Made by a program: the position numbers and the translations under genes
The notes under the pieces: model-generated
Told to the model about the DNA's origin: nothing
The model's input: only the letters and a program-made list of their open reading frames with translations
The model's database searches: none
Source: Phallusia mammillata
Taxonomy: Eukaryota
Assembly (NCBI GenBank): GCA_965637545.1
Contig: OZ281495.1
Coordinates: 22,692,001-22,756,000, forward strand
Reading direction: 5' to 3'
Length of the DNA: 64,000 nt
Shown here: piece by piece, positions 2,859 to 26,149 of the stretch
Layout: every line of letters begins with the position of its first letter
How positions within the stretch are numbered: position 1 is the stretch's first letter

Positions 2859-3644
2859 CAGATCACACCGAATATTATATTACGTTGGGTAAATTGAGGT
2901 TCACAGCATTTTTTATCGCAGCTGTGAAACCGGGGTTTCCAGCTATACCTGGATTTATCGCTTCAACAATCCTGGTAATAGTACGCTATACGAAACTGCC
3001 TTTACTAGGCAAAGCTATACGAAACCGTTTTCGTTTTGGAGACAAGGTCACTTCTAACTTTTGACACCAGTATTCTGTATGATAGAACGTGGAAATTTAC
3101 TTTTTGGCGCACAGCAAATTATTGTTTCAAGTCAGGTTTTAGCTTGTGGGTATTTTAGCAATTGGACAAAAGTGCACCCACGTAATTGTTTTTATTGTAA
3201 CTTTCTGTAAATCGTTGGTTATACCACATCAATAATAACAAGTTTGTTTTGATATTGTTTGATGTCAATTCGTTAACGGAAGCTTTTATTTAAGTGGACA
3301 TGTCGATGGAAAATGTTTCACATCATGATGTGTCACAATATTTACTGAAGGTCACTATTACCATTACACCGATGCTCTTTGGCTTTGTCGCTTCATTCAA
3401 TCGAATAATCTCGTGCTAAGCTACGAAACTACAGTCCCGCCATATTTTTTGAAACCCTGTTGAAAATGCCTTAATAACGAATTTAAGCCGTTCATGTTTT
3501 TCAAAACCTTTTTATTTTGTTTAAATTCTACATGTATAAGAGTATATAATTGCAACACAAAAGCATGTCTTGCAAAATGAATAGTGAAGACATCGATAAG
3601 CGTGTCACAACAAAAACAACGGCATACTGGACAATCGAGTCTGT

Positions 3645-4834
3645 TTACATTCGACCAAACCCAATTCCTATCTCCTCTTCCTCTCCCTGGGCACGAAGCA
3701 ATGCCATATTAACATCTCTGATATATCTATCTCTTTTATCATCGTTCTCAAAGTCAGTAGCCAATTTAAAGCATTCAAGCGTTTCCTTATAGTATTCAAT
3801 AGCGTTTTCCCTTGAACCCATTTTAAGATATGTTGAACCCAGGTTGTTGCAGAGCGTGCCATAAATCTGGTGTTTTTTGACTTTTTTGTCCCCCATGGTT
3901 CGCCGCATGTAATCAATGGTGTCTAATATGATTCTAATCCGTGCATCATTGTTTGTTTCACATACTTCGATACAATGCGCCACATACCCAGATTTCGCGC
4001 TTTGATAGTAAGGATCAATGTTTTCCAACTCCATAAGCATTTCTTTCATGTAATACATTTTTGGCAGAATGTTGCGTTGGATAAAAGCACCCACACTTTC
4101 ATCCGTTTCAATCATACCAGTTACAGTTTGCCTCATACTGCTAATAATATCCTCAGTTATGCCAAATGTTTCGTACGGGCTTTTATCATCGAAAAATATA
4201 TCTAAACACAATTTGTCAATGACCAGCGCAGAGAAACATTTTTCTTGTTTGCGTAATTTTTTAACCAACCACAAAACAGCTTTGCTTGTTGGATTTGCTG
4301 CGGCGATAATCGATTTCAGTTGCTCCTCAATGGCGTCGTAGTCGTGCTCGGTTGCCATAAGACATACAGCATAGTTGAGGAGTGAACGGGCGTTTCTAAG
4401 ATCCATTCCCATTGTATTTCTTTCATCCAACACACCGAAAGCCTCGTCAAACTGGCCATTGTCCAACAAAGTCGGTACATTATCTGTGTACAAAAATGTT
4501 CGTAGTATATCGCATGCGCGAAAAATTCGCATGCGCAAATTATCGCATGCGCAAAAGCAAGTATGTGCTAAAATTAGAAAGGATCATTGAACTGGTCTGC
4601 TTACCTTGCCAGCAAAATATTTTTGCAAGATCAAATTTTGATGCCTGGTCTTTTTTGTCTCTCTGTCCGTGCGAATCATTTGACTCAGTTACGTTTGCAG
4701 CTTGTTCATCAGTTTCTTGTTGTGACGCCACACTTTCTTCTGCAATTGTTGAACAGTACAAGTAAGCTTTAGTAAAATTACCACATAATACATTGGTGCA
4801 TGCAAAAATATCTTTACTTACCGGAATCACTCAT
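3645..4834 (-). CDS. Gene A1: alpha-helical protein with C-terminal TPR-like repeat and acidic N-terminus (~328 aa, 3 coding exons)
   Basis: Exons 4834-4822 (ATG AGT GAT TCC G|gtaagt), 4739-4605 and 4483-3645, all GT-AG, phase 1 and in frame. C-terminal YGTLCNNLGSTYLKMGSRENAIEYYKETLECFKLATDF is TPR-like. The structure is repeated in paralogue A2. Confidence 0.85.
4510..4553. promoter_or_regulatory. Three tandem TCGCATGCGC motifs (NRF1-like) in intron 2 of gene A1
   Basis: TCGCATGCGC at 4510, 4527 and 4543 (16-17 bp period), close to the NRF1 consensus TGCGCATGCGCA. Confidence 0.35.
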
Positions 4835-5076
4835 TTTGATGTCGTGGTACACAGTAGGGTTAAAACTGTATTAAACTCAAGTCCTGCCAACAAGGAGTTT
4901 AGTATAAGCAATATCGCGCGCCAAACCTTTTTTCCGACACTTTTTACAGCTATGTTAAATTGTGACTGGTACACCTTTACCATTTGGACTAAACTGAGCT
5001 TGCCAATAGTTTCAGCTTGTAGGTGAACTGTTTTTTCAACTGAACCACGGTGAGAGATAAGTGTAAAGTAAAGGAA
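4835..5076. promoter_or_regulatory. Putative bidirectional promoter of A1/B1
   Basis: 242 bp between the divergent predicted start codons (4834 minus, 5077 plus). Confidence 0.6.
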
Positions 5077-8000
5077 ATGGAACGTCAAACGATTAATTAC
5101 ATAGTCATGCCCAATGCGTAAGTATTATTTAGTTAAATCCGATCGGAATAGTACCTTAGTTTAGCTGTAAAAAGAATTGTTTGTTAAATGTATTCTTAAC
5201 TGTTTTAATTAAAACACCGTTTTTACTGGGTGCGGGCAGACCTGTCTCGGTCTATCTCTATACATTCAATAAATTGTCGAGGTTGTTAAATGGATCTAAA
5301 ATGCCAAAAATTGAATAAAAAAATTAAATATCTAAGTAGGCTCCCACCGCTATGCGCAAAGTTCAAACATTAGTTGTAAAATGAAGTTTGGTATAACCCA
5401 AAAAAAATACTGAAAAATCGGGTTCTAATTTTCTATCCTATTTTTGTTTTCCTTTATAGGAGCAACGTCGGATTCAATACAAATGCAGGTACGTGTCACT
5501 TTTCTTGAATTCGATAAAAGTGTTCAACCCTATGTCTTGTTTCAGGTGGCGTGACTCAGCTGACCCGATTTAACAAAAAACCCAAAGATAGGACGCGTTT
5601 TACAGGTACAATGAAGTGTTGTCAATATGTATAAACCCCAGTCACGAAGTGGTCCACCGACGTAATGAACCACTAAATCTAGGCCAGGGGTGGGGAACCT
5701 ACTTAGCACTGCGGGCCGCATGAATTGCACAACATTTTCGGGCGGGCCAAATATCTTTTTTATTTTCAAATTCCGTGTAAAAGCACACAAGTGGTTTTAT
5801 ATTTCATCGCTCCAGATTTGATTTTTTTTTGCTGTTACTTGTTTGCAACAAACAAGGCATACAGGTTTATCACTTAATTCGACTAAAATCTGTCCATTCT
5901 TTCTGGAACACCCTAGCTCAATTTAAAACTAACACCACATGGCAAATGATTTGTTACTGCAAGGAGAGACAATCGAGTGACTGTTACGTCACAAATACAG
6001 CAAGTGGTTGAGTGTGGCAATTTTAATAAGTTTGGCGTCAAATGTACAAATGTCGAAGTCTTTTCAAGTACTAAATATTTGTACATAAACGTTTTGTTAT
6101 TGTTTTTTATGCTACGTTTTATGCTGTACTTTAACAAAATAGTGACGCGGTCCACATTAAAAAGGCAAGCGGGCCGCATGCTCCCCACCCCTGATCTAGG
6201 CCATATTTATCGCGTCTATGCCATATACTTGGATATACACAAGTCTTTGCGACAGGTATAATTTAGCCGAACTAAAAAAATACAATCGTTGCATCCAAAT
6301 TTATCTTGTTTTTGGTGCCTTGTCGATATCTTTAGTTGACTGTGAACGCTTTAGGAAAAAAACAAACTTTGTGCAGATATTATTCTTGTTTAAAACTGCT
6401 TATGAGCTAAAAAGTATAAAATACTCTAATTGTTGTTCACACCTACATTTTTGTGTGTTCGCTTTTTACATATTCAATTACAAACTAATTGTTAGGCTGT
6501 TCCCAATTTCCATTACTAAAACGTAAACATAAACAGGACAAAAGCATTACGATTGTGCGCGAACAATTGTATTTTTGACAGTTGTCATTCAATAAAGGCC
6601 ATTGTTTAGCAATGGAGACAGTCGATTCTCAATTCTACTTTGATTTAAACTTATTTAGTGGCACAAAGTGACGTCAAATAAGATTATAGAATAACTTCAA
6701 CCGCTTCGCGGTCCCCCCAAAATTGCCTCACGGACCCCCGAACTACCGCGGACCCTAGTTTGGGAACCGCTCATCTAACCTAACCTATTTATTAACTTGA
6801 TATGTTTTTCTTTTGTTCTATTTGTACAGGACCACAACAAGTTGGCCAGATGTTGCCAATGCTTACAGAACTTCAACCAAATACTGGAAAACTAACCGAA
6901 GGTACTGTTAATTTTTTAAAAATGCATGGTTGCACTTGCTTATTTGTCAGCACATTTTACACTTGCTTCGTAATAATTAGTTCACTTTGTTTTGTGCCTT
7001 ATTGTCGTATCTGGGTGACTGTCTATCCAATAGCAAAAAGAATATGAAAAAACAATTTACATAACCATTGTATTTAGAATCACAACAAATGGGTCTCCTT
7101 AAACTGATCGGAATAGACGCAGAAACATTAGCACAGCCGGAAAATGGTATGTTTGTACATAGAACAAAGTAATCTAAACTAATGTTTTGCAATAAATTTT
7201 AAAGGTAATTAACTAATAAACCAACTTAAGTTACGATTTTTTAACTTAATGTATTTCTTTTTTATTCTATTCATACAGGAGCACTTCAAGTTGGTAACCC
7301 GTTGTTGTCAATGCAAGGGGTTCAAGCAAATACTAAACAACTAACTGAAGGTGATAATTATCTAAAACATGCATAGTTATTCTTATTTTATCAGTATATT
7401 TCACACCTTCCTTTGATTAAAAAAATAATTTATTAAATAATGGTCTTTTAATATTATGTTACTATGAGAAAATGTGTTATGCATAGCAGTAATAATTATG
7501 TAACCTAAAAAAATATAAAATAAAAACACTGTTTCAGGAAGTGACATATTCTCATATTTTAAAATATTACAGAAGCTGGAAAGAAAAATGTGCTAAAAGC
7601 CATGCAAAAACTTGGTATGTAGCTTGGAGTAATGCTGGGCCATTATTAAGTTATAAAGTAATACTAAAAACAAACGATTTTTTTCCTTCATGTCTTAATT
7701 TTATTTTTGTTAAACATCAATGCGTCACAAAGCGTTATTAAAATATTAACGAAACCACGTTTTGTACGACAGAACAAACTGCTCCTAAAGGAGGATTCTA
7801 CTGGAAAACTAGTTTGGAATGGATGATCTCCCATGAAGGTAGGTTTGTGTCAAGCATGAATTTAGTCCACCAAAAAGTTGATTTCCATAGTTTTTTGGAC
7901 GTCATAATAAACATGCCAAAACAAATGTAACTTAACGTTTACATGCACTAAAATATTTTTTCAAACAGTTTTTACCATGTTGAGCACACAACCCTGACTG

Positions 8001-9202
8001 TCGGGGTTTACGAAATTATAAATAGTGGTGTTCACCACTGTTTAATTCAAAAAAACTCTTTAAGTATTTTATGTGACACTACTGCTTCAAAAAAGGTGTG
8101 GATAAATAACCGGGATAGATGTTAATGTGGCGCTAAAGTATAAAACAACATAAAATTCTTCTTCTTTTCTTTACATATCAAAGTGTGAGAGGAGATTTTA
8201 ACATGTTGGTAAACGAGCACTATGTTCGCCCACTACCCCTTAATATCCGAATACCATTTTGTCCACAGCAAACGTCTAATTCGGATCATGTGAAGATACA
8301 AATTTTGTTTAAAAATGTACTGTACTTAAATGTATTTAAAACTTTTTCTTTCTGCAGAGAGAATAGATGCCATACACAGTGACGGTGATCTTTACCAGGC
8401 ATATGGTGTCCATGAAAAAATACTCCAATTCGATCCTTCTGTGCGAGACATTAGATTTCAAATGTACTATTGTCTCACTTTGATGCTTACAAACCGCAAA
8501 GAACGGGCCAACGAAGTATTTGATAAAATTGTGTCTTTGGTCCAAAACATGGGCGAAACGTTTCAAACCGTTTTGCATCTGGCAGAAAAAACTGTAAAAA
8601 TAGAAGGCAAAACGTTTGAGGCAATCTTACTATGCCTTATCGCAGCCAAAATTGCCGATATGAGTACTTTTACTGTTCTTGATACTGCCGAAAAACTGAA
8701 ATGCATGACTGTTCTACGAGAAGCTACAGGAAAAATAACCGACAGTATAAAGAAAGTAAAACCGTTTCTGAGTCGATATTGTATTACAGCAATTCGTCCG
8801 CTGTTTGAACGCATCCAACAAAAACCTCCATCTTCAGTTATAAACAAAAATCTTGTTCAAATCAGAATTGCCACATTCCACTGCATGGAAATCCTGCTAT
8901 TGTACGCTGATGACGACGAAGGAAGAGCACAGTTGCTTGAGCATGCGTTAGAGTTTTTAAGAGAAACCTACGGCAATAAAGTTGCCAAAAAAAGGTGGTA
9001 CGGCATTTTTAACAACAACTTGGGTGCAACATACCTTACCTTGTCGCGCCCAGACAAAGCAGCTGAAGCGTTGTCTCGTACAATCGAGGTTTTCCAGCAA
9101 GCAACTGACTTTGACAACAAGATTGAAAGAGAAGACAGTGTATTTAAGGCAAAGCAGATGCTAAAACAACCGTCGCTTGGGGGATTGGGGGTTCATGATT
9201 AG
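5077..9202 (+). CDS. Gene B1: micro-exon-array N-terminus plus helical/TPR-like domain (~417 aa, 8 coding exons)
   Basis: Exons 5077-5117, 5460-5488, 5546-5605, 6830-6901, 7078-7146, 7279-7350, 7773-7838 and 8358-9202, all GT-AG and in frame (1254 nt). C-terminal YGIFNNNLGATYLTLSRPDKAAEALSRTIEVFQQATDF. Confidence 0.8.
5685..6193 (+). mobile_element. hAT-type MITE in an intron of B1
   Basis: TIRs CAGGGGTGGGGA / TCCCCACCCCTG and TSD ATCTAGGC on both sides. Confidence 0.9.
6530..6772 (+). mobile_element. Right-end fragment of the 1681-2101 MITE family
   Basis: Near-identical to ~1858-2100 and ends GTTTGGGAACCGCT. Left end missing. Confidence 0.75.
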
Positions 9203-9357
9203 GTGAACAGTAGAGGTCTGAACCAGATACGTTATAGAAGTAAACCGGAACATTAGTTTACAGCTTGTATATTATTATCTCGTATTGCGCTTTGCGTCCA
9301 TGTTGCTTTATCTTTAGCGTCTGTTTGAATTTCTGTTTTTTGCATTATTGAAATCCT

Positions 9358-9752
9358 TGTTACGAGTAAACCCGGCCAGTTTTATTTCTCTTTTGTGCTT
9401 TTTGTTTTTCTTGCGTGGATGTGTATTAGTTTTGTTGTATATATTTCGCTTGACATCACTTGTACTCGACTTATAATAAAATGTGCCAAGTATCCATTTT
9501 CTCCGAAATCGTAGCTATCGCTGCCTCATAGCAAACAAACAGCTTCTTTAGCGCCACCGGTTGTCTTTTTTTCTTGTTTTTCTTCCAGTAGATGGCAATA
9601 TCGCACAAAACACAAACATAAAACATGTCGAAATATACAGCCATTGGGCAGGAACCTGGCCGAATGGTCTTGCGCGCCTGAACCATACACAGACATAAAA
9701 AACCGGAGCGGGATTCGTCCCCGGGAGTGTCCTGGGTTCGAACCCCGTGAAA
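9358..9752. mobile_element. Dispersed repeat, solo-LTR-like (related fragments at 13129-13300 and ~40960-41085)
   Basis: Begins TGTTACG and ends CGTGA(A/C)A. The shared segment GGTTCGAACCCAGGAC(A/T)CTCCCGGGGACGAATCCCG is also at 13129. No clear TSD. Confidence 0.4.
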
Positions 9753-10199
9753 AAAAATATACATACAGCCATAAACAACCTGTTCTGAGTTCGTACTCGA
9801 ACCTACTGGGTTTGAATATGAAAAATTGGATAGGTATAGCTCACTACATGTAGTACGATATTGATTAGAGAAAAATAGTTGACATCACGCGTTCGTCTTG
9901 TCCTGCATAACTTTGTGTAAAGACAAATTAGTCATATTGTTTGTAATTTGTATTCGCTGCTTCGAATGAAGCCGTTGTTGCATGAGTAATTTGATTTTCC
10001 AACTGTATTTAAATGAGTTTGGCATAGATACATGAGAAAAAAATACTTCGCTAATCGTACTGCGCCAAATTTTCGAGATTATACTTTTGGGTCCAAGGCC
10101 TAATTTCGGACATGCATTAGCGACGACTTAACAGGAGGAAAACAACAGATGTGTAGTAAAAAAACAAACAGTGTTTTTTTTATTTTACAGCGAACAGTT

Positions 10200-12400
10200 C
10201 ATAATTTTAATATCACAGGACCATGCAAAATTTTACAAACATTTTTTGATGTGATACTGGTACTGTCTTTAAGAATAAATACAGTGTAATAAAAAAAAAT
10301 GTTGTTTACTGTGTACCATGTTTACTGGGTGAACAATTAGCTAAAAAAAATACAATTAAATATAGATTATTATATTTCCCCATGGTATTGGCATTAGGGT
10401 GTTTACAGGAAGTGTGTAAAATAAGTGTTTGCAACGGACGCTTTGTTGCCGGTTTCGTTTGCGTAGTTTTTGTAATTACCACTAACTTGATGTACTTGTT
10501 GATTTAGCATTTTGAGACTGATTTGACAGTCTCTGACTTGGTGTTAGAGTAGAACATTTGACTACACCAGTTCCTTTAAAAACGTTTGTTTATCTAACAT
10601 TTGACTTTTCCAGCATCGCCTTATTTCTTAGCTCAGACTATCAGACTTTTCGGGTCGGTTTTGGGTTCAGGTTTACGTTTGAAACAATTAGTTCAATTTG
10701 ACCTGACTTCCCACTCGGTTACTTTTGTTTCGAGTTTCACTTTGGTAAATTTAATATTCGAGCCCAATTCGGGCTTTAAAAAACATCTGTACCGAGACGA
10801 ATTGGGCTTTGTACTTTGTAGGGTTCCTCCCATATTTTAGGCTTGCTTACATCCCTGTGGGCTGTTTACAATAACAAATACTGTATGATGGTACAAAAAT
10901 GTTGTGGTTGTTTGCTGTTTATCGTGTCGATTGTCACATTACCCATAACAAAAAACGTGTGCGAAGAGACCAAGTCTGTGCTTGTATTTTGTAAACATTC
11001 ACTGAGGAAGCCCCGCGCAAAACAATTATCTAAAATTTTACAATTAAATATAGATTATTATATTTCCCCGTGGTATTGGCATTAAGATGTTTACAGGAAG
11101 TAGGTATAATTAATGTTTGCACACGGACTCTTTGTTATCGGTTTTGATTGCGCAGTTTTTTTATTACCACGAAACCTATTTACTTGTTAGTTTAGAAGCA
11201 AAGATAATTAGATTAAAACACTTTGGTAATACAATAGAATATTCGTTTGCAACCATTGCTTTTAAAAACGTTTATTTTTTCAACACTTGACTTTTCCAGC
11301 ATGGCGTAACCGACTATAGCAGACGTTCATGTGCCAGACTTTTCTGCTGGTCGGGTCTGGATTCGGGTCAGCGTTTAAACCAATGGGTTCATTTGGATCA
11401 GACTTTTTACTTGGTCAACTTTGTATCGAGTTTTATCGTGGTACACTCAAGCCTAATTCGGGTCTTGAAAAAAGTCGGGTCCAAGGCTCCCAGCAGAATT
11501 TCGGGTTTGTACTTTGTAGGGTTCCGCCCATAATTAGGGCCCACTTGCATCACCGTTTTTTTTTGTTGTATTAGCGATAGCTTAAAATGAGCTGTCATGG
11601 AAGACAACAAAACAACAGTGTCGTGAAAACCAAAAAGTTAATGAAACAAGGCAAAACGGTTTATACATTTAATATCACACGACCCTTACAAACATTTTTT
11701 GTTGTTGTGACACTGGTGCTGTTTTTAGGCATAAATAGTGTATGATGATACAGATACAGTGTGATGGCTATTTACTGTTCACCTTGTTAACTGACACATA
11801 ACACAAAAAACGTGCAAAGAGACCAAATCTGTAGCCTACATGGGCGCCAGCAGAAAATTTTGCAATCGGGATCAGATTTTGATATACCTGCACAGGGGTG
11901 CATTGCAATATGTAATTGTGTACATTTAGGCAAAACATATACAGAATAATTCCGTTGCATAAAACTTGATTCACCTTTCGATGTAAAAACAATTCCCACG
12001 AAGTCACACGTCTATCACGTGTACCATTTTGTAAAACTTTAGGGATTATAAAAACAACGGCAGAAACGAAAATGAGACAGATATCGGTAAAATCGCTTAG
12101 ACATTCCTCCATTTCTTAGAATATGAAACTTTTTCAAACGTCAGTCTTTTCGACATAATTTGTTAAAATTAAGATACTTTAAATTCCAAGGGGTACAAGT
12201 GCCCCCTCTTGCCCCTACGTGGCGGCGCACATAAATCTGTGCTTGTCATTGTAAAGAGGCAGAGGAAACCCCGCGGAAAACAAATATTAAACGTTTTGTT
12301 ATTAATTACTAATGATTATTTTTTCCCCTGTCATTGGGGTGTTTACAGGAAATACGTAAATACCCTTGCATTTTGCACTAAGACTATTTGCAAACCACTG
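10200..12400. repeat. Three degenerate tandem copies of a ~650-800 bp non-coding unit
   Basis: A block resembling GATTATTATATTTCCC...GTGTTTACAGGAAG recurs at ~10360, ~11050 and ~12315. TTTCGGG...GTACTTTGTAGGGTTC occurs at ~10800 and ~11500. Confidence 0.55.
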
Positions 12401-13106
12401 CAGTTTTCCTGTGTTCGAGACTGCAGGTCTGCCGGTACACGTCACCTAAACCTAATTTGAATCTTTATCCTGATCGAGCCCAAAAGGCTAACCATAAGAA
12501 TATGCTTCCTCATTCTGACCACGGGCGAATTATTTTGGGGTATTGTCTGCATGTAATGTTTTCCGTGTTTAAACTGTTTTGCAGGTTTCTTTTCTCAAAC
12601 TTTTAAGTCATTGATACATATTTAGAAGATTGATAGGCCCACATACTTACCAAGGTTTTATGTGACCAGACAGCTATGTTACAAAATATGCCATAAGCTA
12701 TAGCTCTCGCTCAATGCATTCCTTGTATAAAACTGGGCTGTATAACCCTCCACAGTTTTATATCATCGAATGTTTTAATTGACTTGTGCGTAGCATCGCA
12801 TGACTAACGTGGTGAAATCAACTTACATTTGCAGGGAGGCTAAACGGAACCTTTTAGGCAAAAGCAAAATGAATCATTGACTTGTCTGCGCAACTGAAAA
12901 GTGGGAAAGCGCTCTTGATTGGTTGCTACTAAAAGGCGCAGCAATTAAGACGTTTTAAAATACCAGCAAACATTTAGATTTTAACCTACCAATCGCCCAA
13001 CAAATGTTTTCATTCTTATTCTCGTTTAACCTATTATAAAATTACCTCTTAATAACAGAAACAAATGTAACAAAAAAACAAATCACAGTGTAATGAAGTG
13101 CACACA

Positions 13107-13300
13107 TTATTATTATTATTATTATTATTGTCACGGGTTTCGAACCCAGGACTCTCCCGGGGACGAATCCCGATCAGGTTTTTTATGTCTGTATGGGTCA
13201 TGCGCGCTGGACCATTCGGCCAAGTTCATGGCCGCATTACAAGATTTTTTGATTAATCACGGCCACCAGTTCGTATACTTTACGACAACATATATTCGCC
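13107..13300. repeat. (ATT)n microsatellite abutting a fragment of the 9358-9752 repeat family
   Basis: ATT repeats at 13107-13129 followed by TGTCACGGGTTTCGAACCCAGGACTCTCCCGGGG. Confidence 0.55.
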
Positions 13301-14465
13301 TTCGGGGTCGCAGAATGGTTAAAAAATAATAATTGTTAATTTGACATTTCAAATTAACACATTCGAGAACAATATTGTTTTGCGTGTATATGGGTTTTAG
13401 TCTTACTAAAAATGTAAAAGCTAAAAAATTATAGTTTAATTTTGTTTTTATAAGCTATTGATCAACAGTTTTAACGTAACTACAAATGCCATGCCACATG
13501 AGCTCATAAAAAAACGAAGGAAGTCGACTGATCTATACATTTTTAATTTGGCCGCTTTCACTTTGAGTTAAGTTCCTTCATGCTTGGTGAAAGAAAACAT
13601 AGAGAAACTATTGCATTAAAATATATAAAAATGCAGTAATGTTAATAAAAAAACGCATTTTTAGTATCGTTATGATTTCGACAAAAATAAATTATTCTCA
13701 AACCGCACTATGGCGGCAGAAATTGTCTGCACCTGTTAATGTATTTCAAACCAGGTAAACTTACAAGCTAACTTTTACTAAAAAAACTAATATCCCACTA
13801 CTGTCAACAATCGCTTTAACCTTAGGTAAATTATTTACATAATACAAGGCAGCATTAGCCCAGCTTCCTAATTCGTTAAGACAGGCTGGAGTGAGAACCT
13901 AACAGCAGCAAGCTTGGCCTGTCTGTATTTTTTTGGCGCTTGCTACTTTTACTTTTGGAATTAGTTGATCAATATTTATAAAGTGAGATTTTATTTTTAT
14001 AGCACAGTTATACAAATATTGTGCTACACCTGTGACATTAAACAGCTTAGGACACAAATATTTCAGGATTTCAGCACTCCCGGCAGCCACTTTATTGCAG
14101 GTTGCAACACCAGAAAATATTATATAAAAAAGTTCCGATTGGTTAGAAGAGATAACATGACAAACAATATCCGTATCTATTTGCAGTCTTCCTGTTTTTT
14201 TGAAACTGCGTAGGTTTAGGCATAAGAACATGTTTTCTAGTTGTAGTGTAACCCATTTGGCTAATTCAAATTAGATTTCCGGTTAAATGCAAGGACGCAT
14301 GGGTTATCCAATTAGAGTTTTGATTTAATAAACGAACACGCTACATATTATGGGTTTCAAGAACAATATAAGAAAAGCATCATAAATACATTTCTACAGA
14401 TTTAATTAATATTGGAAAACTACAACTTACGACATCAGAGAAATACACAATCTGTAAAAGATAAC

Positions 14466-15794
14466 TTAATTTCGTCCAAAGCCAATTCCAACCTCTGGTT
14501 CGAGACCCTGAGCCCGGCGGATGGACATCATGGCATCATTAATGTATTTCATTTTTTTAGTTTCGTCTTGAAAGTCAGTGGCCGATTGAAAGCATTCTAA
14601 GGCTTTCTCGAAAAAATTTTGGGCGTCATTTCTTAAACCCATTTTAAGATACGTTGTCGCGAGGTTACTGCAAATCGTGCCATACATTTGATGTTTGTTT
14701 GCTTCTTCATCCCCTATGGTTTCTTGCATATAATTAACTGTGTCCAAAATTAATTTAATCCGTGCCCCAGTATTTGGTTCACAAACTTCAATGCAGTGCG
14801 TTAAATAGGCAGATTTCACACAATGATAGTAGGGGTCAATATTTTGTAACTGCAGAAGCTTTTGTTTCAAGTTGTATATTTTTGGGAGAATATGTTGGGC
14901 AAACATCTCCATATTTTCATCCCTTTCAACTAAAGCCGTTAAGGTTTGCCTCATACTGGCAATGAAATTCTCAATTATCCCAAAAGTTTCGTATGAGCGA
15001 TCGGCATCGAAATAATAATCTGCACATATTTCGTCAATGAGTAACGCAGAAAACCATTCGTTTTGTTTGCGAAGTTTTTTAACCAACCACAAAACCGATT
15101 TGCTAGTTGGCTTTACAGTAGCGATAACCGATTTAAGCGGCTCCTTAACCGCATTGTAGTCGTGCCCAGTTGACATAAGACATGCACCATAGTTTAGGAT
15201 TGAACGCGCGTTTCTCATCTCCCTTCCCATTCGTTTTCTTTGGTCCAACACACCGAAAGCCTCGTCAAACCGTCCTTCGGCAAAATATGTCGATGTGCTA
15301 TCTGTAAGCAAATACAAACCTTTTTTTACCTTTCGTAACAAACTTTTTTTTGCAGTTACCTTAAAACTGCCAAAAACACAAAATCATAGATTTACGATTT
15401 TTTTAAAATTTGGCATTTTCTTCAGGCTTCTTTGACATGGCCTTGTTAGCTTTAAAACGCAAAAAAGGACCAAATACACATTTTACCCTAATATATACTA
15501 ATCTTAAACCAACACAAAGAATATGAAAAAAGGAGTAAACCATACAGAACCTTGCTTTAAAAATATTTTTGCAAGGTCGAATTTGGATGCTTGATTTTCT
15601 GTGTGATTTTCCTCCTCATACGAATCATCAGAGTCACTTGCAACATGTTCATCAATTTCGTGCTGTTCGGTTGTCGATGTTGACAATTGCGGCATAGTAT
15701 CATCTGTGATCATTAAGAAACACAAGGATAATATTATATTCACGTGCTTATATTGTTCCAAATCTGACGATCTTTACTTACCAGAATCACCCAT
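14466..15794 (-). CDS. Gene A2: paralogue of A1 (~333 aa, 3 coding exons)
   Basis: Exons 15794-15782 (ATG GGT GAT TCT G|gtaagt), 15703-15551 and 15301-14466. QASKFDLAKIF and the C-terminal E(I/V)GIGFGR are shared with A1. Confidence 0.85.
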
Positions 15795-16034
15795 TTCTAA
15801 GTCAACGATTTAAAGAGTTACTAAAACACATTGAGCCAAACTGTATGGCAAGGGCTCCTTATATTAACGCAGAACCTTTTTTCCGGTTTTTTTTTTCAGA
15901 GCCTTTTTTTAAAGCTAAACACACACGCAACCCAGCTACGACAAAACAGCCTGCACCATTCAGTTTTAGCTTAAACGCTGGAAGTACGTAACTCGAAGGC
16001 AGAGTGAGATTGAACTCAAACCCCAGACAATATA
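15795..16034. promoter_or_regulatory. Putative bidirectional promoter of A2/B2
   Basis: 240 bp between the divergent start codons. It shares the exact 13-mer AACCTTTTTTCCG with the A1/B1 spacer. Confidence 0.6.
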
Positions 16035-19000
16035 ATGCATGCTCAGGAAAAGAATATCAACATTTCTGAAGTGTAAGTAGCATCTGATATCTGCATTAGG
16101 TGTGTTGCTCTATAGCAGTGGTTCTTAACCAGGGGTACACGCACCCCTAAGGGGTACGAGAACTATTTTCTAGGGGGTGCGGTGATGCTGAATCATTAAG
16201 GTTATTTATAGGTCTATTCTATATATAAATACAAAAACCCAAAGGGGTACAGCAAGGAAAAAAGGTTAAGAACTGCTCTATAGTTTTTACAGGCTATGAT
16301 GTCTGTGAGGTAACTCTGTTTTGGCTTCAATTTATTATTTTGGCAGAATAAAATAACCGTAAAAATTAATAAGAAAAGCTAAATGTAGGTTTAACTTTTA
16401 CATAAATTTAACGTTTTAATGCATAACGTATAATTTGTCAAATATATACTGTTTTGTTTACAGAGGCAATGTTTACATCAATGCAGGTAATTTACAGTCT
16501 TAGTAAAAATACCTGACATGTTTTTGCAACTAAAGCCTGTTTGATGTTTTTTCAGGTGGTGGACATACGCATGCTCATTCTCATACAGGTATAATATACT
16601 ATTTGTTTTACGTCAGAATGTTTAAAACTTCGGTACAGGGTTAGCTTTTCGCGCCCCGCGTGCACCATGTGAGCACTCAATACAGCGTTACATAAACGAA
16701 ATGAATTACTGAACTCCTAAATTAAATAACTGTGGCCTTAAAGTCAAATTTTAGTTTCTTGCATTTTTTGCCGAAAGTGAGTAATGATGCCAGGAGCGAT
16801 ACCCATTGTGTTGTAGATCTTTTCGATAAAATTGTATAAATTTGCAAAATAATTTTTTTAAACATGTATGTCTTAAAGTATTACATTTAACAATTATTTT
16901 GTAGTCAACACAAGAAGTGTATCCCAAACGTCGCGAAAATTCCAGTCAAATTGTAAGTAATCTGTCACAACAATATCAGCCTCTATTTGGTCAGTGCGAA
17001 CTTAAGATGTAGGAGCGAACCATTTTAAACCATAAATAAGAAGTAAAATGGGCAGCTTATTGTTAGGTAATATCTATCTTAAATTAGCAAAAATAAAACT
17101 TCTGATTTTTAAGGACAGGGGTTGCCTAATTACGAGTTCTTATTTCAAAGATATTCGCACAAACACTTTTGCGATTAGTTTAACCTAGTTTCGCAGCATT
17201 TAAACATATAGAAACGATTCAAAGGCAGCTTGTTACAATACAACACGACAGAAATAAAAATATTATTTGTATGCGCAACTGCCTTCTTCTGTTACTTGTG
17301 ATGGCACAAAGGGTGTAGGGACAGTAGGGAGCCTCATATATTCCATACAAATAATCTTACAATTTGTCAATTGCACTAGCTTACAGGGGATTGTGAAAAA
17401 TGCTATTTTTGGTATTTCACATGTATTTTATAGGCATGCGTGTTTACAAGCAGTTAAACGATTGTAAAATTGTCTCGTTGTTAATTTGTTTTTAATACTT
17501 TGGATTTGCGGGTTTAATTTGGGCTAGTTTTAAAAAGCAGAGTTGCGGTGAAAGCTGAGCAGATCTTTCGCCTTAAATATTGTTTTGTGTATAAAGCCGG
17601 CGTAATATACATATTTGATTCGAATGCATACGGTTTACCACTTCGATTTTCAATCAGTACACACTTGCATGTATATCAAAGAAACTCTCAGAATTTGATA
17701 AGTTATTGCAAAAACAATACATTACGTGTGCATACATCCATTTTAAAACACCCAATTAGCAAAAGAGTATTTTTTTTCTAAATGGCCCGCCTGCAAAAAA
17801 ACCTAAACGGATTAGCTAAAGAGTTTGCCGACAAGGTTAGACTTGGTCAGCAACAAAACGGAGGTAAAGCTTTAGGAACGGCAGTTGGCGCGAAACTACA
17901 GTTGTTTAACTTTTCTTCTCTACCATCAATTTAAATGCAAAACAATTGTAGCAAATTGTCACTCGGTGTTTATTCCAAACTATGTGGGGCTTGGCAAAAT
18001 TTCTTTATTTGTTTTAAGAAAGGCTAAATACGTAAAGTTGCGTGTTTTTCCTAAAATATTTAAATTAAAATGTATTTAGCTGGGCAAAGAGGAGGATTGG
18101 CGCACATACTGGAAGGTGCTGAAAACCTGAACCGAGATGGTGGGAAATATAGTCATACTTGAACTTACAGTGTAATCATCTAACAAAATGTGATTCAACT
18201 AAACCCGTCCTTGCAACATTACAAATGTTGTTATGTATCTTTATCTTCGATCTCCGCACACAAAAACTGCGCCTATTTATGTCATAAACAACAAGAAATT
18301 AATTCCTTTTTAAAGTTTAATACGTTGATATTCCTGCAAACTCATTACACAATTACTTAAAATCATTACCAACTAAACAACGATAATTAAAGTATTAGCA
18401 TTTGAAAAAAGCTTTTATCTTTTAAATACGAAAAAGGATATACGTCAACAAATCATAGTTAGGATAATGCGTAACAAACATCTTCAAATTGTTCCTAAAT
18501 TATTAGAGATTTATGTTTTTCCACAGCCAAAAAATATATCGCTAATAACTTACAGTTGCGTGGTTCAACTAAAGCTTTTGTACATGATTTATATATTTAG
18601 CACAACAAGGAAGAGGGTTAATGCAAATGTTCCGGGGATCAGTTGAAAACCTGACCGGAGGACGTAAGTAGAAAATAATTTTTGTACTAAACATCACTTT
18701 TCCCTTCCACCAAAAAGTGTACAAAGTAAAACTAAATTTTCCTGACTAATCGTAAAACGGGCTTGGCTTCTTGTAGTATTCGATATGAAACAAAGTTATT
18801 GTAAAAGCTACGATTAGCGGTGCGTTGTAAGTTACAACAAAACATACCTATTTTGCATGGTGGTCCGTATCTCTCAAAAATCGTAAAAGGGTGATATTTA
18901 ATTACGTTTAAAAAAATCGATGCCGGAAAAAAGTAAAAAAAGAAGCACTGAAAATATATAAACATTACAACCTCTCGCAAACGACCCACGTTCTGTTGCC

Positions 19001-22000
19001 GCCCTTCTGCCGTATTGTGTTCTGCAGACCTGCTTCAAGTGTCCCTTTTTAACCGGTTTAAACAAGCACAAATTCACAAAAATCTTGAGTCATAAAAGTT
19101 TGTAAAACATACTTGACAACAACAATGTATTTATGATTAACTTTCATGAAATGTTTAATTAATTACAAACATTAAATAAATTTCTTAAAAACTTGAAATT
19201 ATGTTTTTTAAGTTGTCAACTTAACCTGACAGTAACTGCAAATGAATTTATAAATGTCAAAATTTATTGCAGGAGTAGGTAATCACTGAGCTACAGCCTA
19301 TTTACCGGGGATTGCAAAAAAATACAGTATGTGGTCATTGGGGTTGTAACGTATACTTCAGTGCTCCAGGTGGGCACAGGCGTCCACTCTGGTACTTCAA
19401 ATTAGATTCAAAAACGCGTCTGCCAGGTCCCAACTACAGGCTTCTACCTACTAACACTCCACACTAGGTTCCAAAACAGTTTATTTGTAAACAAAGCCCT
19501 TGCTAGGTTCAATTAGCAGGATGCAGTTACTTCTATGGGATTACGATGGTAAAACTGGCGGACGGCTTTCTAAAGGAAATATTTTGGGATAAGCAGCATA
19601 CAACAATATAACACTCTTACCGAAACGTCTGGACCAGGACTTTGAAACAGTTATTTGTTGACAAGCACTCAAGTCAAACTGCAAGTAACGAAGTACAATT
19701 TAAACCAGGCATATTGTCACAACAAAAGGTAAACAATGCAAGACAATGGTTATTTGCATAATGTTGACAAAGATACACAAGTAAACAAAACAACACTTTC
19801 CAAAACAAATTGGTCACGAATTTCTGGCAGACTTTATGTGCACAGCAATAAGAAACAGGTTTACGTATGATTTAACAAGCAATTTACTTAATTTTCCTAA
19901 AAAACAATGTAGTTTCCTAGACACATGAATTGAACCACCAACGTTTTCAGCAAACTTGTCGAACACAAAGCGTAAAACTGTCCACATGACGGGGCTATTT
20001 ATACTGAAATTTACAATTTTACGGAGACGGTAGACAAAACAGTAATTTGCGATGTAACAGGGGTTGACATGACTACTATTTCGCTGGCTCTAGGCAGACT
20101 TGGGCCAACAAAAAATATTGCAAAAATAGAACATTTGGAGATAAACTTTTAGGAAAGGAAGTCAGTTCTACAGTTGTTTTAACATCTGTTATCTACTTTT
20201 AAAATAAATGCATAGCAATTATTTCGAAATGTCACTCAGTGTTTATTCCAAACTATATGGTGCCTTGGGAAAAAAAAATCTTTATTTGTCTTTAAAATGG
20301 CTAAATACGTAAAGTTGCGTGTTTTTCCTAAATGATTTAAATTAAAATGTATTTAGCTTGGCAAAGAGGAGGATTGGCGCAAATACTGGAAGGTGCTGAA
20401 AACCTGAACGGAGATGGTAGGAAATATATTCACACTTGAACTTACGTAATTTTATGTTTAAATCAAACCACCAACAAGGTACCTGATATAGGCTTGAAAG
20501 GTAATAAGGTTCACTGCTCATACTATCTGACATACAAGAAAAAATGATTCCGTTTTGATGTAATTTAAAAGTATATGCGTACTTACAAAGATTTAAAAAG
20601 TTTTGGACCTGCAAGTTTTGTTTAATTGTTGTTACGACCAATCCAAATTTAAGTGTTTGTTTTCAAATTTTTACAAAGAAATTTAAAATTGGCAACAAAA
20701 ATGGAAAGGTTGTGTTTTCGAAATGAAACCTTATTAAGATATATTACTAATGGGGTCATTTTAAGTTAAATGAATCATTATTCCATCTGGAAAAAAGAAT
20801 TACTTCAAATAAATTTTATTGCGGTTTCGTTTGACAGCCATTGCTTGCAGTAAGGCCCACAAATTTTTGTCATTTTCTAAAGAGTCTTTTACAGTAAAGA
20901 CGACTGATAAGCAAAAAAATGCTTTTTTGTACCTTTAGATTAACAGTTATATGTCTTAGTTAACAGTGTATGTGTTATATAAGGTAATAACGTTGTTTGT
21001 TCGAACTTTATTTTGACCGAAGCAAAGTATAAATGAGTCTGATTGGTTTCAAGGCTTTTTTTCAAAAAAAAAGAAAATGTTAGGCCTTATTAACTGCATA
21101 GGAATGTATTAAGGCTCAAGTTTTAATATTTTTAAAAATCTGTCATACGACAAAAACAAAACTTACAAACGTCCACAAAATCTAATGGATGTTTAATATC
21201 AATCTCTGTAACCATCAAAAAATCTTTATTTGTCTTTAAAATGGCTAAATACGTAAAGTTTCGTGTTTTTCCTAAATGATTTAAATTAAAATGTATTTAG
21301 CTGGGCAAAGAGGAGGATTGGCGCAAACACTGGAAGGTGCTGAAAACCTGAACGGAGATGGTAGGAAATATATTCATACTTGAACTTACGTAATTTTATG
21401 TTTAAATCAAACCACCAACAAGGTACCTGAAGGTATAGGCTCGAAAGGTAATAAGGCCCACTGCCATTTTACATACAAGAAAAAATGATTCCGTTTTTGT
21501 GTAATTTAAAAGTATATATGTACTTACAAAGATTTAAAAAGTTTTGGACCTGCAAGTTTTGTGTAATTGTTGTTACGACCAATCCAAATTTAAGTGTTTG
21601 TTTTCAAATTTTTACTAAGAAATTTAAAATTGGCAAAAAAATGGAAAGGTTGTGTTTTCGAAATGAAACCTTATTAAGATATATTACTAATGGGGTCATT
21701 TTAAGTTAAATGAATCATTATTCCATCTGGAAAAAAGAATTGCTTCAAATACATTTTACTGCAAATTTGAATTTTCTTTTACAGTAAAGACGACTGATAA
21801 GCAAAAAAAATGCTTCAGATTTTTTGTACCTTCAGATTAACAGTTATATGTCTTAGTTAACAGTGTATGTGTTATATAAGGTAATAACGTTGCTTGTTTG
21901 AACTTTATTTTGACCGAAGCAAAGTATAAATGAGTCTGCTTGGTTTCTAGGCATTTTTTTCAAAAAAAACATGAAAATGTTAGGCCTTATTAACTGCATA

Positions 22001-25000
22001 GGTATGTATTAAGGCCCAAGTTTTAATAATTTTAAAAAACTGTCATAGCACAAAAACAAAACTTGCAAACGTCCCCAAAATCTAATGGATGTTTTATATC
22101 AATCTCTGTAACCATCATGTCAAATTTGGCCTAAAACTCGTAAATGGTTTTTCAGTTACACGCAATATTTTTTTAAGGAGTTTTGTTACCTGCAGGTACC
22201 TACTTACATAACAACAGGAACGCTTTTTTCCTGAGCCATTATGCGACAAAGAGGAACTGTGTATTACAAAAAATGTGTTACAAAAGTAACTGTAGGAAAT
22301 GATATCACTACACGTTAAAATATTCATATTCCATCATTGTGATACAATATTATAATGTTGCAATAGTCCGAAGTTAGGCTGATTATAAAGCAGGAACTTT
22401 AGAGTGCGATCAGTTCTTAGTGTGTTGGTTTGGCGCAGAGGTGGGCAACCTATGGCGCATGCACCAAACGTGGCGTATTGTATCTTTGTGATGATCCTAA
22501 ACAATAAAGTATGGCTACTTGTTATTTTTAATTAATTTCTTCTTTGGCACATTCTATTTAGGAATGTCTTAAATAGATCACCACATTTTCGCCAGATTGC
22601 TAATGAGACTTAGTCCAGTCAAAGTCTGTGTTAAACACAGGTTGGGATTTGTGGTGCTTTTGTGGTGATTACCAAATAGGCTAAACCGATTTTTTTTGTT
22701 ATATTTTTGCCTCTTGGTGCTATTTTACTGATAAGTATGTTGGTGTTGTTGTTCTAGAATCTAGATAGTTCGAAAAGTGGCCCGTGACAAATTTTGAGTC
22801 AATGTCTTCTAATTTGAAGCATGTATAGCCAATTTTTGCAAACAATATATAAATATATATATATATATATATACAATAGTCATAACAAATCAGTTATACT
22901 AAAGCACCGCCAGAAATGAAAGCAACGCAACAAAATGTAAATAAACCGCCAGTTTTAATTAAAGTATTAGCATTTAAAACACGAAATCTTTAAAACACGA
23001 AAAAAGATACGTCCACAAACGTTAAGAATCGTTCATATTTGGGATAATGCGTAATAAACATCTTTAATTTGTTCCTAAATTATCAGAGATTTATGTTTTT
23101 CCATAGCCATACAGTTGTGTGGTTCAACTTTTAAACATGATTTTGTATATTTAGCACAACAAGGAGGAGGTTTCATGCAAATGTTCCGAGAATCAGTTGA
23201 AAACCTGACCAGTCAACGTAAGTGAAAGAAAATCTTTTTAAAAATCTTGTTTATAAGTTAAGGGATTCACGGGCGTAAATCCCGAAGCGGGGGTAGGACG
23301 TGTTCCCTCGAAAAAGATGTTTGAGCAGTGCAGCTATCGATGGAGCACTTTGCCATTTTATTTGCGTAATTTGAAATATTTTTTTCGTCCAAGAAATGGG
23401 CGACGATAGATGAAAAATGCGATTGTTTTCTTTAGAGAACTGGTATACCAACACACTAAACTAGCATTGTTAAGTCCGTGTAACGCCCCCAAAGTCGATA
23501 ACCAGGTTTTTCTGGCAGGATTAGAGTTCAAACTTGAGGTTCAATAGAACGGGCTTGATTTGGGCCTGCCACTCGATTTTACTTTCCCACATTTTCGACG
23601 ATTTTATGCCTAAAAAACGGATTCGAGCTGGGTTTGGGGGTTGGACTTTTGGGTCCAGGTCTCGATTTTAGGCCCATTTACTGCTTTGTCGGCTTGTGTG
23701 ATTTTATAGTTGTCTTCTTGGCTAAACAAATCTGTTTAATTCCATCCCAGATCACAAAACACAAACCCAGGCAATCGTTTGCGCACAATCTTTAAGTCCG
23801 GTCACTGGCACAACTAACTGCCCATCAAGTGTTTTTGCGATGATATACTTTTGTAAGGAGTTAATATACTTGGTAAATACGCTTTTGTCTTTTTTTAGAA
23901 AAGCAGTACGTTTAGGCTTGATAGTTCCACTTCTCTGCAATACTAAGTGCTAGGCGAGCCTTTTTATGTATTTTATTTTTATTTTGATGTCGTGTCCTTG
24001 AGAACCTTTATTTAACAATAAAAAACAATTTGACAAATAGACGCTTTTATACACACAATGTATTTAGTGGGCCATGGCGGAGGATTGCTTCAAAGTCTTT
24101 TAAGTGCAGAAAACATTTCAGAAGAAGATGGTGAGTGTTAAATAAATCCCAAAATTTGTTACTTATTTAACATTTGTTTTCAGTGTAGTTTTAGAGTTTT
24201 GAACACAGTTGCTGTTGAGTACGACTCTTATTTAACATCTTTTTGTAGTAATAGTTTTAAAATTACTCTTACCCAACAACCACTTAACATATTGTATGAT
24301 AGTATGGCGTGTTTTGTGCAACTCTGAGAAGCATATTGCGGCTCATTGACAGGCTCAACAGCCGTGCACCGGAAGTGTGCAAATGGCACAATTGACAAAT
24401 ATAACCGAACACAAGGCCGCCTTGTGTAGTTTTTGGAGTTTCGTAGATAGTAAAGGGTTTGTTAAGAATAGGGACTTAATTGCGCCGATCTTAAATCCAT
24501 ATAAACATATCGTTAGGCACATAAACTTTAGGGTAAACGTGGGTGCCACAACTTAAAAGAAAACTTGATATATAGATATATACTATTTTATGTAAACTAT
24601 TGAGAGTACCTAAAGTAATTCACTTTAAGTGGGGTAACATCCGCCTAAATACCAAAGCAACCTGATTGATTTTGACTATAAAAGAAAAACTGTTGGCTTG
24701 ACAAAAGTTTTTTAAAACATAACATGTGTTTACAGAAAAGGCTAAAACTGTATCTTTTTCTGCATTCCTGACACTTTAATTTTACTGAAACATCGCAAAT
24801 GACTCAAATAGGCATCTTTTTCACGACAGGCTCTTCGTCAAACAGTACATTTTCTTGGAAAACCGATTTGGACTGGATGATGTCGCATGAGGGTAAGTTT
24901 AAAGTTTCCGAAAACCTTGCAAACGTTCTTGACACGATACGCTCTCAAGTTACTGTCGTATCGATAAAAGTAATTCGCTTAGCAACATTTTTACGTAAAC

Positions 25001-26149
25001 GTGTACCGACGAAAAACTGTAACAATTACTTAATGAAATGAATTTGAAAAATAAAACTCAAGGTCGGTGACGGAAATATGTAAAATACAGGCATGACTAG
25101 AACATATACGAACAAACGTTTTAGAAGACTTCGTCATCTTGACTTATTGCCCAAATTACGTCAGTTAAGTTAAAAGTTAAGTTTAAAGTAGTTAGCGGTT
25201 GGATAAGGCGTCCGCCGATAGATGTACCGGGGTTCGATTCGGCTGATCCAATTGATAACAGAAGTCGAATATACCTATACAATTATTTTGTGCAGAAACT
25301 ATAGAATCCATGCACAGCAACGAGAAACTCTACGAGGCCTATGGCTTCCATGAAAAAATACATCAGTTCGATCCTGACGAGCGAGACATTAGGTTTCAGA
25401 TGCACTACTGCCTCAGTTTGATGCTTACAAACCGCGAAGTACAGGCCAATAAAGCCTTCGATAAAATTGTGTCTTCAATCCGAAAGATGGGCGAAACGTT
25501 TCAAAGTGTTTTGCGCTTGGCGGAAAAGACAGTAAAAATAGAAGGCAAAAGTTTTGAAGCAATCTTGCTATGCCTTATTGCCGCCAAAATTTCCGACATG
25601 AGCATTTTTACTGTTTCCGACTCTGCTGATAAATCAAAATGCATGAACGTTCTGCGGACAGCTGCCGGAAAAATTAGTGACAACAATAAAAAAGCCAAAC
25701 CATTTTTGAGAAGATATTGTCTTAAGGGTGCCCGTCCGCTGCTTGAACACATTCAACAAACCGCTCCGGATAACATGTACAAGAATCTTATCAGTCTGCG
25801 AATTGCCACATTCCATTGCATGGAAATTCTGCTGCTGTATGCTGATGAAGACGAGGAAAGAGCGCTGTTGCTTGAAAGGGCATTGCAGTTTTTAAGAGAA
25901 GCATATGGCACTGAGGTTCTCAAAAAAAAGTGGTACGGCACGTTTTCCAGCAACTTGGGTGCCACATACCTCTCACTCTCGCGACCGGACAAAACAGCTG
26001 AAGCATTGTCTCGGGCAATCGAAGTGTTCAAGCAAGCAACCGACTTTGACGACGAAATGGAAAGGCAACAAGATATCAGAAGCGCAGAGCAAATGTTATA
26101 TCAACCTGGACTTGGGAGCTTAGGGGTTGCCAAACAAACCCATCGTTAG
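16035..26149 (+). CDS. Gene B2: paralogue of B1 with expanded micro-exon array (~459-475 aa)
   Basis: Exons 16035-16072, 16464-16486, 16556-16588, (16905-16952 uncertain), 18080-18139, 18601-18663, 20357-20416, 21301-21360, 23155-23217, 24068-24130, 24830-24892 and 25296-26149. All GT-AG; the internal exons are phase 1-1. WKTDLDWMMSHE matches B1 WKTSLEWMISHE. Confidence 0.75.
16116..16275 (+). mobile_element. Short hAT-type MITE in intron 1 of B2
   Basis: CAGTGGTTCTTAACC ... GGTTAAGAACTG with TSD CTCTATAG on both sides. Confidence 0.85.
20275..22116. repeat. Recent ~944-bp tandem duplication carrying a 60-nt exon of B2
   Basis: 20275-21217 and 21218-22116 are highly similar, with exon copies at 20357 and 21301. 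Part of the unit is a dispersed repeat also found at ~59395-59810. Confidence 0.85.
25188..25245 (+). other. tRNA-derived remnant (SINE head or tRNA pseudogene fragment)
   Basis: A-box-like TAGCGGTTGGATAAGGCG and B-box GGTTCGATTC. No intact cloverleaf. Confidence 0.3.

Follow-up and report, generated by a model that had tools for sequence, protein, structure and literature searches.

Related genes that diverge from a short common spacer are known from several systems. Histone H2A-H2B and H3-H4 genes form divergent paralogue pairs, which are served by a bidirectional promoter and duplicate as units. Among plant NLR genes, pairs such as RGA4/RGA5 and RRS1/RPS4 consist of related genes lying head-to-head, for which co-regulation as a pair has been proposed. 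The present work concerns two head-to-head pairs of TPR-like genes, A1/B1 and A2/B2, located between positions 3645 and 26149 of a 64,000 nucleotide stretch of the Phallusia mammillata genome (assembly GCA_965637545.1, contig OZ281495.1, positions 22,692,001 to 22,756,000; hereafter the window). On balance, we think it probable that one ancestral head-to-head A/B pair with a shared promoter was copied as a block by segmental duplication, and that both genes were kept under selection.

Like the histone pairs, A and B are related genes lying head-to-head within a few hundred bases, in a block that is repeated with both partners kept. Unlike the histone genes they belong to a lineage-specific family, and the arrangement is known here from start codons in the sequence. 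With the paired NLR genes they have in common the orientation and the short spacer, the start codons being 240-387 bp apart in the four pairs described below. Unlike the NLRs they possess neither an integrated decoy nor NB-ARC or LRR domains: the proteins are only ~330-390 amino acids long with a TPR-like solenoid, and Pfam scans of the four window tails and of the N-terminal pieces revealed no NB-ARC, NACHT or LRR domain, only weak TPR matches. The vertebrate IFIT genes are similar in being clustered, in coding for helical repeats only and in combining a tiny first coding exon with a single large one. A and B differ from them by their extra exons, by the lack of the interferon-response (ISRE-like) element GAAANNGAAA, which was not found in either window spacer, and by the absence of IFIT proteins from the 50 best Foldseek matches and the 60 best profile matches to solved structures. 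B resembles the RHIM proteins and the fungal HET-S/NWD2 amyloid gene pairs in that a short Asn/Gln-rich N-terminal strand motif is combined with a repeat protein, the partner gene is adjacent and the genome contains many RIPK1-like kinases; the differences are the missing Pfam RHIM match, the absence of the motif from A and the absence of NACHT. Ascidian RIPK1-like kinases with a TPR tail share with A and B the tail encoded in a terminal exon, the phase-1 joints and the micro-exon linkers, and differ from them in that A and B carry no kinase.

The four long open reading frames of the window (279-297 amino acids) are the terminal exons of A1, B1, A2 and B2. An earlier note on this stretch, made from the letters alone, had described the two pairs as divergent, with start codons 242 and 240 bp apart, and the coordinates agree with this description (Table 1). 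Its account of the genes also proved correct: A1 and A2 both have a 13-nt first coding exon and an acidic N-terminus, phase-1 micro-exons are present in both B1 and B2, and the tails of A and B are paralogous (25% identity, E 3e-21). The same can be said of the divergence of spacers and introns. A blastn comparison of pair 1 with pair 2 recognised exons only, and the alignment of the two spacers contained several indels at 53% identity. The near-equal spacing of the two window pairs is not general, as will be seen from the pairs found elsewhere in the genome.

When the genome (240 Mb) was searched with the tails and the candidate loci were read individually, two more head-to-head pairs were found. 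Pair A0/B0 lies directly left of the window on chromosome C2, with the A0 start at 4113 (-) and the B0 start at 4501 (+) of locus L007, 387 bases apart; the first exon of A0 is again 13 nt long. Pair A7/B7 is on chromosome C7, with the B7 start at 3399 (-) and the A7 start at 3718 (+) of locus L008, 318 bases apart; the first exon of A7 has 10 nt, in the same phase as in the other A genes. To the left of A0 there is a further A-type gene, X, whose first exon is short and in phase 1 and which also has an acidic exon, and adjacent to it a B-type gene, Y, with the N-terminal Asn/hydrophobic motif; these two are in tandem on one strand. Thus, each A-type gene of the genome has a B-type neighbour, four times head-to-head and once in tandem. 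Tail genes outside the A/B subfamily have their neighbours on one strand, as judged by eye from the coordinates. The unplaced 18.9 kb contig C186 (L005) appeared at first to hold a fifth pair, and was discarded as assembly redundancy on the ground of its 100% identity over 6905 bases to C7:694677-701581 (L004).

In the maximum-likelihood tree of the tails, the A clade has the topology (X,(A7,(P0001,(A0,(A1,A2))))) and the B clade the topology (Y,(B7,(B0,B1,B2))), with support values of 99-100 at the key nodes; P0001 is an A-like protein of another tunicate. The picture was unchanged in a 72-row tree that included relatives from other species. Together, the A and B tails separate from the kinase-linked tails (see below) as a clade of their own with a support of 96-97. 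Divergence between the copies was closely matched in the two genes: the number of synonymous substitutions per site (dS) between copies 1 and 2 was 0.77 for A and 0.84 for B, and the number of nonsynonymous substitutions per site (dN) was 0.43 for both genes between copies 0 and 1, and 0.61 (A) and 0.64 (B) between copies 7 and 1. Mirrored trees and matched divergence, as read from the sequences, support the view that a two-gene block was copied as a unit three times, and in this respect the proposal of the earlier note that the pair is the unit of duplication was borne out. One of these copying events would have linked chromosomes C7 and C2, and the other two would have been local to C2. The dN/dS values between copies 1 and 2 (0.34 for A and 0.23 for B) indicate purifying selection on both genes. 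No homology was detectable between the stretches that separate the units, and for this reason the limits of the block that was copied cannot be located.

Since a short spacer is common to A and B, co-regulation is plausible, and A and B are likely to be co-regulated from one promoter in the spacer. An exact 13-mer, AACCTTTTTTCCG, is common to the two window spacers (positions 4924-4936 and 15873-15885), and the distance that separates it from the A start is similar in pairs 1 and 2. With up to one mismatch allowed, the window contains three matches to this 13-mer against 0.26 expected, a number reached in one of 100 shuffles.

The tail comprises ~275 residues and is encoded in one terminal exon with a phase-1 joint. 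The A1 tail was modelled with AlphaFold2 from a 19-row family alignment, and the model was all helical with ~15 helices (predicted local distance difference test score (pLDDT) 90.6, predicted template modelling score (pTM) 0.83). In a Foldseek comparison this model was related with a probability of 1.0 to consensus TPR, LGN/Pins, kinesin light chain and 14-3-3 proteins, with template modelling (TM) scores of 0.3-0.5; the ESM Atlas entries matched by the tail were generic TPR proteins. At the sequence level, Pfam gave only weak matches to single TPR models in the four window tails. The TPR at residues ~224-257 of A1 scored 25.1 bits against a cut-off of 27.8, and the corresponding repeat of a kinase-linked tail scored 30.7 bits. 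In a profile search of solved structures the match was confined to one canonical TPR near the C-terminus of the tail. From these results, the tail is a TPR-like solenoid and belongs to the TPR-like alpha-solenoid superfamily, without a specific known relative.

At least 129 tails were found in the genome, each a single open frame of ~260-300 amino acids. An exhaustive profile search gave full-length tail matches, each in a single stretch, in proteins of ~230-500 amino acids, and the tail-matching proteins looked up in Ciona intestinalis, Clavelina lepadiformis and P. mammillata were all annotated as 'uncharacterized'. Judged by the full-length match and the single terminal exon, the A and B tails belong to an uncharacterised ascidian TPR-tail family. 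In word-based protein searches, P0001 and P0002 were the only matches to the A1 tail, the B1 tail or the family alignment (the A and B exons were searched singly), and a literature search on RHIM in Ciona and on ascidian bidirectional promoters gave nothing on this tail family.

A link to protein kinases emerged from the tails outside the A/B subfamily. In one checked case a Pkinase exon is located directly upstream of the tail on the same strand, and the best solved relative of this tail-linked kinase is RIPK1 (E 8.5e-29). The genome contains at least 102 relatives of it at E <= 1e-30 (102 of 1681 candidates scored), with the RIPK1-like kinase exons concentrated on C2:0.7-4 Mb and C1:33-36 Mb. 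Inspection of the coordinates by eye indicated that ~20 further tails are preceded, at a distance of 1-4 kb and in the same orientation, by a kinase exon of this type. The same tail is, in this genome, also the C-terminal module of a very large RIPK1-like kinase family. Near the A/B loci there was no kinase exon of the RIPK1-like family at the same threshold and among the same scored candidates, which makes A and B kinase-less members of the tail family. It is the link to the RIPK1-like kinase expansion that gives the finding the larger share of its interest: the A/B pair offers a compact entry into an uncharacterised ascidian family tied to it. If A and B are co-regulated or interact, the pair could be a pointer to the wiring of the expanded kinase network; otherwise, the locus still illustrates clearly how two divergent genes can be copied as a block.

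Two observations on tail genes were made outside the window. At C2:2.60-2.95 Mb, tail genes and RIPK1-like kinase genes form mirrored twins, one copy on each strand and with the same score, for example the tails at 2649080(+)/2832220(-) and 2691775(+)/2786461(-) and the kinases at 2727406(+)/2750589(-). The cause is either an assembly artefact or a large inverted duplication with its centre near 2.74 Mb. At L013 (C8:13738001-13748000), a single tail gene is head-to-head with a 1347-amino-acid Pao/BEL-type retrotransposon frame matching Peptidase_A17, RVT_1 and DUF1759.

The N-terminal Asn/hydrophobic motif of the B-type proteins is present in B0, B1, B2, B7 and Y; it is short and was judged by eye. 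An Asn/Gln-hydrophobic motif was also seen at the N-terminus of the kinase-less tail proteins P0057, P0089, P0096 and P0132 of other tunicates, which makes the motif older than the Phallusia pairs. Acidic heads, too, recur elsewhere, e.g. in the Clavelina protein P0026. The core of the RHIM is (I/V)Q(I/V/L)G. Pfam searches including RHIM (PF12721) gave no match for exon 1 of Y and of B7, the joined exons 1 and 2 of B1 and B2 lying outside the search, and none in the N-termini of P0057, P0089, P0096 and P0132 at E values up to 10, all of these being short pieces. A motif of the HET-S/NWD2 type on both partners was not seen when the sequences were read by eye: the N-termini of A are acidic and without the B motif.

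Putting these results together, A and B would represent two sister subfamilies whose members are small, lack a kinase, are probably cytosolic and have an ascidian-specific TPR-like tail as their core. A tandem duplication is their most likely origin, and X and Y, the basal members, are still in tandem. One of the two genes would then have been placed head-to-head with its partner, which brought both starts to a spacer of 240-390 bp, most likely a bidirectional promoter. We infer a shared promoter and co-expression; that A and B act in one pathway, not necessarily as an obligate heterodimer, is a guess. It is likewise a guess that B may be a self-assembling adaptor acting through its N-terminal Asn/hydrophobic strand motif, and that A may be an acidic, motif-less counterpart which competes for, or modulates, the same TPR ligands.

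Several observations weigh against this interpretation. The head-to-head layout goes back to a single evolutionary event followed by inheritance, and the four pairs are not independent. The spacers of all four have little sequence in common, only weak blocks, and the 13-mer AACCTTTTTTCCG does not recur in the spacers of pairs 0 and 7, in the other fetched loci or elsewhere in the window. No A-type protein of P. mammillata was found in the protein collections searched. For B1 there is such a record (P0002), which begins inside the 6830-6901 exon, so that the 5' exons of B1 and its start at the spacer are predicted. The remaining points come from other species. In Clavelina, four family genes stand in a one-strand row. 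For the sole family gene found in Ciona, no family member in divergent orientation occurs within 10 kb, and in the tree neither species has its tails inside the A+B clade. Another tunicate, represented by metagenome and run assemblies (ERZ27241785/86/89, JGI 3300001689 and 3300027611, and DRR090687, in contigs without overlap), has the A-like proteins P0001, P0007, P0009 and P0016 and the B-like proteins P0011, P0022 and P0031. There, no second tail was found within 10 kb upstream of P0007 or of P0009, within 3.6 kb upstream or 10 kb downstream of P0022, or within 5.7 kb downstream of P0011. Because the A7 and B7 tails of Phallusia are only 1.7 kb apart, this argues against conservation of the compact pair in that tunicate, not conclusively, as larger introns could have the same effect. 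In view of the tandem X/Y, the one-strand row of Clavelina and the missing nearby partner in the other tunicate, the word 'obligate', which the earlier note had used for the pair, does not hold. The note had also looked to a mapping of homologues in this genome and in related species; in this genome four of the five A/B neighbours are head-to-head, and the layout was not found in the other species sampled.

These points bear differently on the possible explanations. The layout could be a historical accident, in which an inversion in a tandem array was followed by segmental copying, without shared regulation or joint function. A single origin would suffice for it, and the poorly conserved spacers, varying between 240 and 387 bp, as well as the failure to find the layout in the other species sampled, are what such an accident would leave behind. 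We nevertheless regard this as rather doubtful, since all four pairs, the old one on C7 among them, have kept both partners intact at dN/dS values far below 1, and since the start codons have stayed less than 400 bp apart while introns and flanks diverged beyond recognition. The intactness of both genes through old duplications in all four head-to-head pairs, together with the different heads of the paralogues (acidic in A, strand motif in B), would also fit a sensor/helper heterodimer, in which the tails of A and B bind to each other as a recognition and signalling module and binding keeps the pair together. This analogy with paired immune receptors seems quite unlikely to apply: the NB-ARC, NACHT and LRR domains of such systems are missing, X and Y are not head-to-head, the relatives in Clavelina and Ciona have same-strand neighbours or no divergent partner nearby, and in the other tunicate the available sequence next to A-like and B-like genes (3.6 to 10 kb) showed no partner tail. 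A complex prediction for the A1 and B1 tails, run without controls, gave a score of 0.00 against a mark of 0.34 and counts neither way on binding. A physical sensor/helper partnership between A and B is at present unsupported.

The strand motif of B allows yet other readings. By analogy with amyloid-type signalling pairs, it could nucleate an amyloid-like assembly within the network of RIPK1-like kinases and TPR-tail proteins, with A as a regulator encoded next to it. The recurrence of the motif in B0, B1, B2, B7 and Y and in kinase-less tail proteins of other tunicates, and the fusion of the tail to RIPK1-like kinases, are consistent with this. However, none of the N-terminal pieces searched matched the Pfam RHIM model, A lacks the matching motif that defines the fungal pairs, and the motif is short and was recognised by eye, which leaves this explanation highly improbable. 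A wider proposal would make A and B a two-gene module of a tunicate-specific innate network of TPR-tailed RIPK1-like kinases, with B as the adaptor through a RHIM-like Asn ladder, the co-expressed A as an acidic stoichiometric regulator, and the pair maintained by selection on the balance between the two; we consider this very unlikely to be right as a whole. The duplication of one ancestral pair with a common promoter, followed by retention of both genes under selection, is therefore the interpretation that we retain.

The gene models of the window are compiled in Table 1. Joining the exons of A1 (13 + 135 + 839 nt) and A2 (13 + 153 + 836 nt) yields proteins of 328 and 333 amino acids, respectively, with canonical splice sites throughout. 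The first coding exon of both genes has its GT donor in phase 1, and every joint in A1 and A2 is phase 1. The first-exon site of A1 is 92.6% identical to that of A2 over 27 nt (blastn), and the first 55 residues of A2 include 15 D+E versus 3 K+R.

Table 1. Coordinates of the A- and B-type gene models and of the spacers in the window
Feature	Position	Strand	Basis or remark
A1 terminal exon, TPR-like tail incl. stop codon	3645..4483	(-)	open frame, acceptor, weak TPR Pfam matches, AlphaFold2 model
A1 exon 2, acidic, ends KFDLAKIFCWQ, phase 1 on both sides	4605..4739	(-)	AG/GT, open joined frame, blastn match to A2
A1 first coding exon, 13 nt	4822..4834	(-)	ATG and GT donor
A1 start codon	4834	(-)	
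Pair-1 spacer, 242 bp	4835..5076		presumed bidirectional promoter
B1 start codon	5077	(+)	
B1 exon 1, 41 nt, ends in phase 2, start of Asn/hydrophobic motif	5077..5117	(+)	
B1 exon 2, 29 nt, brings frame to phase 1	5460..5488	(+)	
B1 candidate exon 3, phase 1	5546..5605	(+)	outside the P0002 match; donor choice uncertain
B1 micro-exons	6830-6901, 7078-7146, 7279-7350, 7573-7614, 7773-7838	(+)	tblastn of P0002; canonical sites
B1 terminal exon, TPR-like tail	8358..9202	(+)	95% identity to P0002; acceptor site
A2 terminal exon, tail	14466..15301	(-)	open frame; 58% identity to A1
A2 exon 2, acidic region	15551..15703	(-)	
A2 first coding exon, 13 nt	15782..15794	(-)	
A2 start codon	15794	(-)	
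Pair-2 spacer, 240 bp	15795..16034		
B2 start codon	16035	(+)	
B2 exon 1, 38 nt, ends in phase 2	16035..16072	(+)	
B2 exon 2, 23 nt, restores phase 1	16464..16486	(+)	
B2 repeated phase-1 micro-exons	18080-18139, 18601-18663, 20357-20416, 21301-21360, 23155-23217, 24068-24130	(+)	profile search of frame fragments, splice contexts
B2 penultimate exon	24830-24892	(+)	B2 exon chain resolved in part
B2 terminal exon, tail	25296..26149	(+)	70% identity to B1

The exon-1 layout of B1 is repeated in B0, B2, B7 and Y. P0002, a P. mammillata entry of UniProt/NCBI with 382 amino acids ('Uncharacterized protein LOC100176565'), matches six exons of B1, namely the five micro-exons and the tail, which join as one open frame. 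The micro-exons of B2 (18080-24130) are preceded by a near-identical intron end (..tgtatttag), suggesting that exon and flanking intron were duplicated together. At their C-termini, A1 and A2 (3645-3680 and 14466-14500) carry a short Gly-hydrophobic tag, ..E(I/V)GIGFGR, and B0, B1, B2 and B7 (in the window 9170-9202 and 26100-26149) the sequence ..SLG(G/S/F)...

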